From: Hypanus sabinus
Taxonomy: Eukaryota
Direction: 5' to 3'
NCBI RefSeq assembly: GCF_030144855.1
Contig: NC_082712.1
Location: forward strand, 137,764,001-137,828,000
DNA: 64,000 nt
Part shown: in pieces, positions 44,201-44,885 of the stretch
Numbering within the stretch: position 1 is the first letter of the stretch
Layout: the number at the start of each line of letters is the position of its first letter
The notes under the pieces: model-generated
What the model saw: only the letters and a program-made list of their open reading frames with translations
Databases searched by the model: none
What the model was told of the DNA's origin: nothing
Position numbers and translations under genes: made by a program

Positions 44201-44885
44201 GCAACGCGTATGCTTATGGTATGGGTACTTACATAGTGACTGGGCGAGCAGGCCTGATCTTTATCCATCCTTACCCATGTGCCTGCTATGCAAATCAGCT
44301 TGCTCTGGTGTCATTTTAATTTCCAAGATCTGTTTGAGTTAGAACTGGAAGGAAGGGTATGGGAGAAGAAACTTTAAGCATAGTTTGAGGTTTTCTGAAA
44401 TGTTCAAATATCTTCAGCAATAAGCTGCTGTTGCAAGATCAATGGAATAGTTCAACAAATGAGTTTTATTAAGTGAAATTATTAAGGAATAAGAGTCTAG
44501 TACATGTCTTTAATTGTGATAAAGTACAAAACAGACTTGAAGGGTTGAATATCCCTATCCATGTTCCAACACTGCCTGCAGACCAACGTTGCAATTTCTT
44601 TGTAAGCCAAAAGCATCAGTTACTTTAAAGTTTTAATGTTTTGATTATTCTCTCTTCCAGCTGAGATTTTCTCCTGTTGTTGAAGTTCACACAATGGTGG
44701 CATGGTCCTTTGCTTTACGTGAAGCTCGGAAGGGCCATTGGATACAGGCAGCTTATGACAGAGCAAGTTTCCTGGACAGGGTGCGGAACACAGAAATGGC
44801 AATTGGTTATTGTCTCCAGAAGGATCACAGACTGAAAATCTGGGAAAAAATTCACAGTCATAATTCAAAGAATTATGTACAGTAG
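33964..44885 (+). CDS. PPP1R15-family protein (GADD34/CReP-like eIF2alpha phosphatase regulatory subunit), ~413 aa, three coding exons
   Basis: join(33964..34105,35674..36548,44661..44885) = 1242 nt with compatible phases (1, 0) and GT-AG introns. Hydrophobic N-terminus, acidic PEST tract, LWKSFFTTDIYNPWNF motif, C-terminal KK|LRFSPVVEVH..W..RKGHW...DRASFLDRV...IGYCL...HR domain. Confidence 0.88.
34423..34850 (-). mobile_element. Penelope-like element 3' fragment in PPP1R15-like intron 1
   Basis: Reverse complement of the [10 protein letters not shown] terminus, pyrimidine tract and cagcatctgcagac tail. Confidence 0.8.
35674..36548 (+). CDS. PPP1R15-like exon 2
   Basis: ttttgcag| 875-nt open frame with DDEEWDDSEESS...NEILWKSFFTTDIYNPWNFSA; ends PTCKK|gtatgt. 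Confidence 0.9.
38166..38203. repeat. (TA)19 microsatellite
   Basis: Perfect TA run inside the YIG codons of the Penelope-like element. Confidence 0.95.
38727..38761 (+). ncRNA. Minimal hammerhead ribozyme-like motif in the Penelope tail
   Basis: AGTC-CTGACGA-A-GGGT(CTCG)GCCC-GAAACGTC-AAC: core intact, helix I weakened by a G>A change. Confidence 0.6.
38991..41887 (-). mobile_element. Full-length hAT (Buster/Charlie-type) DNA transposon, 2897 bp, in PPP1R15-like intron 2
   Basis: 8-bp TSD GTTTAGAC (38983-38990, 41888-41895) with central TA; 16-bp imperfect TIRs CAGGGGTCAGCAACCT / AGGTTGCCGACCCCCA; subterminal GGGAGCCGCA repeats. Confidence 0.95.
39461..41396 (-). pseudogene. hAT transposase (~644 aa once corrected), single +1 frameshift
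   Basis: BED finger (CLIC...H....H), catalytic DES/TDG(A)/CEQVFS, HCILH. ORFs 40458-41438 and 39461-40633 join if one base is removed from the C5 run at 40627-40631. Confidence 0.92.
42723..42885 (-). mobile_element. Penelope-tail short repeat with partial fold-back
   Basis: acacgaggaaatctgcagatgctgg...gtcgacgtttcgggccgagaccc...; same family as 47178-47407. Confidence 0.7.
43650..44085 (+). mobile_element. Penelope-like element 3' fragment
   Basis: EKQHIIFHL..DGMNINFS, pyrimidine tract and tail. Confidence 0.7.
44661..44885 (+). CDS. PPP1R15-like exon 3 (PP1/eIF2alpha-binding domain)
   Basis: tctcttccag| LRFSPVVEVHTMVAWSFALREARKGHWIQAAYDRASFLDRVRNTEMAIGYCLQKDHRLKIWEKIHSHNSKNYVQ*. Confidence 0.92.
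   Translation: MRFSPVVEVHTMVAWSFALREARKGHWIQAAYDRASFLDRVRNTEMAIGYCLQKDHRLKIWEKIHSHNSKNYVQ

Follow-up and report, generated by a model that had tools for sequence, protein, structure and literature searches.

A PPP1R15 paralog beside RPS13 in Hypanus sabinus reads KKLRF and DRASF in its functional core

Gene structure and family membership

The window analyzed here is a stretch of 64,000 nucleotides from the Atlantic stingray, Hypanus sabinus (NCBI RefSeq assembly GCF_030144855.1, contig NC_082712.1, positions 137,764,001 to 137,828,000 of the forward strand), and all positions below count from its first letter. It holds LOC132397249, a gene for a 413 aa protein (NCBI protein P0001) of the PPP1R15 family, whose members (GADD34 and CReP among them) bring the integrated stress response (ISR) to an end. 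A first-pass annotation of the window had pointed out that both functional motifs of this protein are non-canonical, KLRF where the protein docks protein phosphatase 1 (PP1) and DRASF where it binds eIF2alpha. We find that LOC132397249 is an intact PPP1R15 paralog under purifying selection. The two deviations differ in age and probably in consequence, the leucine being an old elasmobranch trait and the serine private to Hypanus.

Both motifs are hosted by LOC132397249. Its exon-2 peptide is a 100% match to P0001, and the coding sequence (CDS) spliced from the window (33964-34105, 35674-36548 and 44661-44885, all on the + strand) gave P0001 exactly by tblastn and splice reconstruction, with GT-AG at every intron. 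Coding exon 1 (33964..34105) runs from Met1 to about residue 47 and includes a hydrophobic N-terminal segment. Coding exon 2 (35674..36548) encodes the disordered middle of the protein, where an acidic tract, LWKSFF and D.YNPWNF form a module like an R15B repeat, and it ends in ...CKK. The last coding exon (44661..44885) encodes the PPP1R15 functional core, Leu340-Gln413, and closes with the stop TAG at 44883-44885.

The last coding exon opens with the CTG at 44661-44663, directly after the acceptor ttccag, and the donor after 36548 reads AAG/gtatgt. This last junction is in phase 0, so the protein reads ...CKK/LRFSP... across it (the slash marks the junction). An identical phase-0 junction lies just before the Val/Leu codon in Pristis (locus L001), Narcine (L004), Heptranchias (L002) and Callorhinchus (L003), and this common position makes a mis-spliced gene model an unattractive explanation for the leucine. 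The AGT at 44766-44768 is codon 375 and gives Ser375, within ...GHWIQAAYDRASFLDRV, and its sequence context is ...RKGHWIQAAYDRASFLDRV.... The first-pass readings of CTG in KK/LRF and of AGT in DRASF were both confirmed.

The last intron (36549..44660, +, 8112 bp) is 8.1 kb in Hypanus vs 2.0-5.6 kb in Pristis, Narcine, Heptranchias and Callorhinchus. Within it lies a frameshifted remnant of a hAT-superfamily transposon (39461-41438, - strand), seen as two overlapping open reading frames (ORFs) split by the frameshift, one with zf-C2H2_12 (Spin-doc) and DUF4371 and the other with the hAT dimerization domain. Much of the extra length of the intron is attributable to this remnant. Reverse-transcriptase ORFs of the LINE type lie around the gene at 20962-23569 (+), 49833-51475 (+) and 59851-60462 (-), and such material makes up much of the non-genic window.

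Family membership is clear. The protein scores 45.8 bits against the Pfam family PF10488 PP1c_bdg (gathering cut-off 26.1) over residues 200-402, and the last exon by itself scores 36.4 bits. The core aligns without gaps to human PPP1R15A (7NZM) and PPP1R15B (4V0U). The first-pass assignment of one motif to PP1 docking and the other to eIF2alpha binding was correct. In exon 2, both repeats of a mammalian R15B can be aligned with residues 213-261 (the acidic tract, LWKSFF and D.YNPWNF), which are among the best-conserved columns of the ortholog alignment. Their counterparts are the ED, H2 and H3 elements of the R15B region that captures trimeric eIF2 (PMC7615683).

The RPS13-linked locus

The coding exons of RPS13 (26434..28093, +) lie directly upstream of LOC132397249, on the same strand and at a distance of 6 kb, and they serve as the synteny anchor. 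RPS13 is the classic host gene of SNORD14 copies, and three intronic SNORD14 (U14) box C/D snoRNA copies were found in it above the Rfam gathering score (26694-26786, 27803-27898 and 28169-28260). RPS13 is also directly upstream of the ortholog in Mobula, Pristis, Heptranchias, Chiloscyllium, Carcharodon, Callorhinchus and the teleost Aplochiton. Hypanus belongs to this RPS13-linked orthogroup by position and by full-length collinearity, and the alignment and the tree are concordant with that.

The Aplochiton taeniatus locus (L005 1-22330) has the order PIK3C2, RPS13, PPP1R15-like gene and a PH/WW-domain gene of the PLEKHA type. Its PPP1R15-like protein has 543 aa and the canonical motifs KKVRF and RDRDRF. 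The same PH/WW gene is downstream of the ortholog in Callorhinchus (L003 21322-23158). Because of the Aplochiton locus, we place the RPS13-linked paralog beyond the cartilaginous fishes as well. A separate paralog with canonical KKVRF and RDRSRF is present in Mustelus, Heterodontus and Chiloscyllium, and the canonical copy in Chiloscyllium adjoins a nucleobindin gene.

On the human map, PPP1R15A lies near PLEKHA4 and NUCB1, PPP1R15B near PLEKHA6 and PIK3C2B, and RPS13 near PLEKHA7, PIK3C2A and NUCB2. This pattern of PLEKHA/PIK3C2/NUCB neighborhoods fits the RPS13-linked gene being a candidate third PPP1R15 ohnolog that was lost from mammals. Reviews describe the vertebrate PPP1R15 family as having two members, GADD34 and CReP (PMC10743859). 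For the name 'PPP1R15C' we found a single stray mention in the literature.

Two deviations in the functional core

Leu340. Orthologs came from 12 chondrichthyan species besides Hypanus plus the teleost Aplochiton, which makes a clade of 14 sequences, and the family comparison used 167 sequences, 153 of them representatives outside this clade. The L-R-F of the docking motif is at 44661..44669, and Leu340 takes the position of Val556 in human R15A. Leucine is found here in 8 elasmobranch ortholog species, namely all 4 batoids (Hypanus, Mobula, Pristis and Narcine) together with Heptranchias, Pristiophorus, Heterodontus and Mustelus. Valine is found in Carcharodon, in three orectolobiforms (two species of Chiloscyllium, and Hemiscyllium), in the chimaera Callorhinchus and in the teleost Aplochiton. 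Outside the clade the position is Val in 144/153 sequences, Ile in 5/153, Met in 1/153 and Leu in 0/153. KKLRF falls outside the canonical RVxF pattern [KR][KR][VI]x[FW], and in this comparison "non-canonical" is a fair term for it and the leucine is a distinctive mark of the orthogroup.

Hypanus and Narcine encode the leucine by CTG, Pristis and Heptranchias by the synonymous CTC, and the chimaera has GTG (Val). A maximum-likelihood tree of the full proteins, which recovers the accepted species groupings, needs no fewer than three switches between Val and Leu, of which one falls on the elasmobranch stem and two among the galeomorph sharks. On the sequences compared, Leu340 is the ancient, normal elasmobranch state of the RPS13-linked paralog. 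The valine state co-occurs with a phenylalanine five residues further on (KKVRFSPF in Carcharodon and Chiloscyllium, KKVRFSSF in Hemiscyllium). At that residue 345 (44676-44678 in Hypanus) the leucine species have Val, Ile, Leu or His, and the chimaera has Val together with its docking Val. The RVxF residue and residue 345 possibly covary, with at most two events to go by.

We consider it unlikely that Leu340 is disabling, because it has been kept through elasmobranch history in a constrained core and alternates with Val as if it were near-neutral. Two other PP1-binding proteins lead to the same view. In Rb, the full docking motif is presumably KKLRF. Rb docks PP1 through an RVxF-like KLRF (PMC3104554, citing Hirschi 2010). 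In Phactr1, which has LIRF in the same RVxF-PhiPhi-R-W string as PPP1R15B, the mutation I520A at the valine position cost only 4-fold in affinity, and F522A about 650-fold (PMC7599070). The rest of the string is also in place. Lys338, Lys339, Arg341, Phe342, Val348, His349, Arg362 and Trp366 are invariant in the clade. The PhiPhi motif Val348-His349 (44685..44690) corresponds by alignment to human V564-H565 (PMC10743859), and Arg362 ... Trp366 (44727..44741) to human R578 ... W582, which are the Arg motif and the invariant Trp of the hinge, with Gly-His-Trp in Hypanus for Gly-Pro-Trp. These three elements agree with the family. Most probably, Leu340 stands in for Val in a near-neutral way and is compatible with PP1.

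The first-pass annotation had also suggested that near-RVxF strings in exon 2 might compensate. A deletion removes KVNVSF from Pristis. In RESVKF the Phe gives way to Leu in Pristis and Mobula and to Tyr in Heptranchias, and the residues in front of this string are acidic rather than basic. Neither string is conserved, and neither holds up as a compensating dock.

Ser375. Position 375 is equivalent to Arg591 of human R15A. Arg occupies it in the 12 other chondrichthyan species, among them Mobula, which belongs to the same order as Hypanus. Outside the clade it is Arg in 149/153 sequences, His in 2/153 and Leu in 1/153, and Ser is unique to Hypanus among the 167. Pristis encodes the arginine by AGG, Narcine and Heptranchias by AGA and Callorhinchus by CGG, and Hypanus has AGT, a single third-base transversion away. 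In the alignment of shark, ray and chimaera orthologs proposed by the first-pass annotation, the RF arginine is canonical in every species but Hypanus, and the RVxF residue is Leu in many elasmobranchs and Val in the rest of the species.

For the eIF2alpha-binding motif we used the Rojas 2015 pattern as quoted in PMC5346070, Rx[Gnl]x1-2Wxxx[Arlv]x[Dn][Rg]xRFxx[Rlvk][Ivc]. In the form given by that quotation, all specified positions agree with the Hypanus protein except the R of RF, which is Ser375, and the other orthologs agree in full. The first-pass remark that the W, G, D, R, F and R around the serine are kept is borne out. Pro to His365, Glu to Ile367, Arg to Tyr371 and Arg to Asp378 are further departures of Hypanus from the family majority.

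Structural work on the human complex shows what these residues do. Human R15A Arg591 is buried between Met44 and Tyr81 of eIF2alpha and forms a salt bridge to Asp83; Arg587 also forms a salt bridge to Asp83, and Arg594 contacts Tyr32 and Asp42 (PMC8500838). R591A, together with W582A, had the strongest loss of activity in vitro, with substrate binding lost, and the mouse counterpart R584A weakened ISR suppression in cells (PMC8500838). On the opposite face Phe592, Arg595 and Arg612 bind G-actin, and Trp582 is the hinge (PMC8500838). In Hypanus, Arg591 corresponds to Ser375 (AGT, 44766..44768), Arg587 to Tyr371 (TAT, 44754..44756) and Arg594 to Asp378, so that 0/3 substrate-facing arginines are left. 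Phe592 and Arg595 correspond to Phe376 and Arg379 (Phe376-Leu-Asp378-Arg379, 44769..44780), Arg612, the distal G-actin contact, to Arg396 (44829..44831) and Trp582 to Trp366, and all four are kept. The equivalents of the G-actin site thus appear to be complete.

The three arginine positions are not alike. The Arg587 position is Arg in 124/153 sequences outside the clade and the Arg594 position in 82/153, and within the clade the first is His, Asn, Gln, Leu or Tyr (Tyr in Hypanus alone) and the second His or Asp. Because these two positions vary across the family and were already changed in the clade, the truly exceptional event is Ser375 alone.

One of the two His exceptions outside the clade is a dragonet R15B (P0005, Synchiropus splendidus, 847 aa), which reads DRAHF and also lacks the RF arginine. 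It would count as a second naturally occurring variant where human R15A has Arg591. S. picturatus PPP1R15B (P0154) falls in the same 90% cluster as P0005, and DRAHF was read from P0005 alone.

The serine may be atypical of the species, either as a heterozygous or rare allele or as a base error in the reference, with the normal Hypanus protein carrying Arg. AGT differs from AGR by one third base, no variation at the site is seen among the 12 other chondrichthyan species, Mobula included, and the protein is on a single contig only. Against this, the flanks have no frameshift or low-complexity context that would invite an error, substitution errors are rare in modern long-read assemblies, and a second private change, Tyr371, lies one helical turn away. 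We regard an allele or error as unlikely, if the most credible of the alternatives to a real change.

The position of Tyr371 is of interest in its own right. Over the 65-residue core Hypanus and Mobula have three differences, all of them within AAYDRASF vs AAHDRLRF, and Tyr371 and Ser375 are the Hypanus-derived ones. Both private changes are thus at i and i+4 on the substrate face, and the eIF2alpha cleft that takes up Arg591 receives an aromatic residue, Phe489, from PKR (PMC8500838). Tyr371 could then fill the Met44/Tyr81 cleft in place of the arginine and preserve activity. However, with residue 371 hypervariable across the clade, the Tyr may be due to drift, and we think that compensation within the helix is very unlikely.

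Selection. The codon analyses used 5 taxa, with the core taken as 65 codons (Leu340-His404). Nei-Gojobori dN/dS among four elasmobranch CDSs was 0.17-0.23 for the core and 0.45-0.66 for exons 1-2. Once changes had been assigned to branches by the outgroups Narcine and Heptranchias, core pN/pS was 0.20 for Hypanus and 0.21 for Pristis. Adding codons 371 and 375, which were unpolarizable by the rule used, raised the Hypanus value to about 0.33. The terminal branch of Hypanus in the maximum-likelihood tree is not exceptionally long. LOC132397249 is constrained and not decaying.

Decay of the gene was rejected on dN/dS and the intact gene structure. A dN/dS near 1, which the first-pass annotation had named as the mark of decay, did not appear in the core or on the Hypanus branch (about 0.2-0.33). 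A milder form would be early decay of the Hypanus copy under relaxed constraint, with Ser375 as its first disabling hit. The loss of an invariant functional residue and the enlargement of the last intron by a transposon insertion would suit such a start. The reading frame and every splice site are intact, though, the Hypanus-branch pN/pS resembles that of the Pristis branch, and the other family-invariant residues examined are all kept, which makes early decay the least probable of the alternatives, and highly improbable.

Interpretation and comparison with known systems

The reading we favor, with somewhat better than even confidence, is that LOC132397249 is a functional third PPP1R15 paralog that still assembles with PP1 and G-actin, and that the grip of its core on eIF2alpha has weakened in Hypanus, making it a hypomorphic adaptor. 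Homology to the human complexes of known structure predicts that the core docks PP1 through KKLRF, Val-His, Arg362 and Trp366. The helix after the PP1 string would bind G-actin through Phe376, Arg379 and Arg396, with its opposite face (Tyr371, Asp372, Ser375, Asp378) turned to the substrate. With Ser375, Hypanus alone would recently have lost the arginine that in human R15A fills the Met44/Tyr81 cleft of eIF2alpha, in addition to older, clade-wide losses of both flanking substrate arginines. The PP1-R15-G-actin holoenzyme would still form, with a weaker grip on the eIF2alpha beta-barrel, and the Hypanus core would bind and dephosphorylate eIF2alpha-P less efficiently than the cores of its orthologs. 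Presumably, Ser375 is tolerated thanks to the canonical R15A-type paralog of elasmobranchs, to a retained acidic/LWxSF/DPYNPxNF module that may still capture eIF2, or to both.

A low-affinity regulator had been among the first-pass suggestions. Its substrate side is plausible, given that R591A had the strongest in vitro defect (PMC8500838). On the PP1 side, KLRF is a documented PP1 dock in Rb (PMC3104554).

A number of points weigh against a hypomorphic adaptor. Ser375 is known from one assembly, and a search with the 63-aa last-exon ORF for fragments from other stingrays or individuals turned up no candidate. The canonical R15A-type paralog was seen in other elasmobranchs only, not in Hypanus. 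In the LOC132397249 protein we could not recognize the H1 helix that R15B needs to capture eIF2, or an R15A FLKAWVY-type eIF2gamma helix; the search for such a helix found only a conserved Glu-Trp and then an acidic run, without a conserved hydrophobic residue at Trp-4. Published RVxF consensus sequences have only Val or Ile at the position of Leu340 (PMC12723162). Lastly, the selection estimates, from 5 taxa and 65 codons, leave room for a recent relaxation on the terminal Hypanus branch.

Another reading of the altered substrate face would have the protein act as a decoy or dominant negative, a sink for PP1 and/or G-actin, or be retargeted beyond eIF2alpha, its substrate face having been adaptively remodeled. 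None of the three substrate-facing arginines of the human protein is left in Hypanus, and at Asp378 the charge is reversed. The altered helix is common to the elasmobranch clade (G[HQK]W[IVML]Q, A[HYNQL]D, RF[LM][DH]R) and is under purifying selection there, and a canonical R15A-type paralog coexists in three shark genera. On the other side, the Arg591 equivalent is kept throughout the clade save in Hypanus, and the Arg587 and Arg594 positions vary even in undoubted members of the family (R15B has Lys at 594 and DP71L has Val at 587). The upstream module of the eIF2-recruitment type is conserved, and no alternative substrate is hinted at by any of our data. We consider a decoy or a retargeted protein quite unlikely.

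The version in the first-pass annotation, a decoy or dominant negative arising from two jointly degenerate motifs, is unsupported, as Leu340 is elasmobranch-wide and swaps with Val, and Ser375 is private to Hypanus; we found no support for its suggestion of another substrate either. Because the leucine and the serine differ in age and probably in effect, a unified decoy with two degenerate motifs is supported in part only.

The KKLRF/DRASF protein is a new sequence variant within a known family. A Leu-type RVxF has long been kept in the RPS13-linked paralog of cartilaginous fishes, the only Leu at this position among the roughly 170 family sequences examined, and through the orthogroup the weight of the Val position inside the RVxF-PhiPhi-R-W string can be tested on natural sequences. 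Hypanus in turn offers a natural loss of the arginine that structural work marks as the key substrate contact, and Hypanus vs Mobula or Pristis is a natural single-residue contrast for the higher-order substrate-contact model of eIF2alpha-P dephosphorylation. The serine would be more telling if it were fixed in dasyatids and changed activity measurably, and if it were a rare allele or an error, the Leu observation alone would remain, which is modest. There is a small chance that this is an elasmobranch paralog with a remodeled substrate face, recognizing eIF2alpha by PKR-like insertion of an aromatic residue or targeting PP1 and G-actin to another substrate; it would then be the first natural PPP1R15 with altered substrate logic.

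Compared with human PPP1R15A/GADD34 (7NZM, 4XPN), the Hypanus protein has the same ungapped 65-residue core, with RVxF-type docking, the Val-His PhiPhi, the Arg motif, the hinge Trp and the actin-facing Phe/Arg/Arg, and its VHxMxAW segment is R15A-like. It differs in Leu for Val556, in Tyr, Ser and Asp for Arg587, Arg591 and Arg594, in its length (413 aa vs 674) and in having no four-fold FLKAWVY repeat array. The loci differ as well, the Hypanus gene being beside RPS13 and a shark R15A-type copy beside a nucleobindin gene.

PPP1R15B/CReP (4V0U, 4V0X) is the best PDB match (E 3.3e-07) and has the AIGYCL...HR tail in common with Hypanus, and several of the orthologs are named 'PPP1R15B(-like)' by NCBI. 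Hypanus has one acidic/LWxSF/DPYNPxNF repeat unit of the R15B substrate-recruitment region, where R15B has two, and no recognizable H1 helix. Its docking motif is KKLRF vs KVTF, and R15B keeps the RF arginine. The synteny also differs, since the Hypanus orthogroup goes with RPS13, a PLEKHA-type PH/WW gene and, in the teleost, PIK3C2.

Outside the family, the C-terminal PP1 docking site of Rb has the identical K-L-R-F as an RVxF-like motif (PMC3104554). Rb is a directly docking substrate of unrelated sequence, however, and lacks the PhiPhi-R-W extension. The Phactr1-PP1 complex (6ZEE) is like ours in having a non-canonical RVxF (LIRF) in the same RVxF-PhiPhi-R-W string and in being regulated by G-actin, and the side chain at its Val position contributes little compared with the Phe (PMC7599070). 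Phactr1 belongs to another family with other substrates, and G-actin competes with PP1 in Phactr1 but is a cofactor for R15. The viral proteins DP71L and ICP34.5 have the minimal R15 core with the eIF2alpha-binding motif as quoted from Rojas. DP71L also lacks the Arg587 equivalent (it has Val) and is active all the same, but both viral proteins, unlike Hypanus, keep the RVxF Val and the RF arginine.

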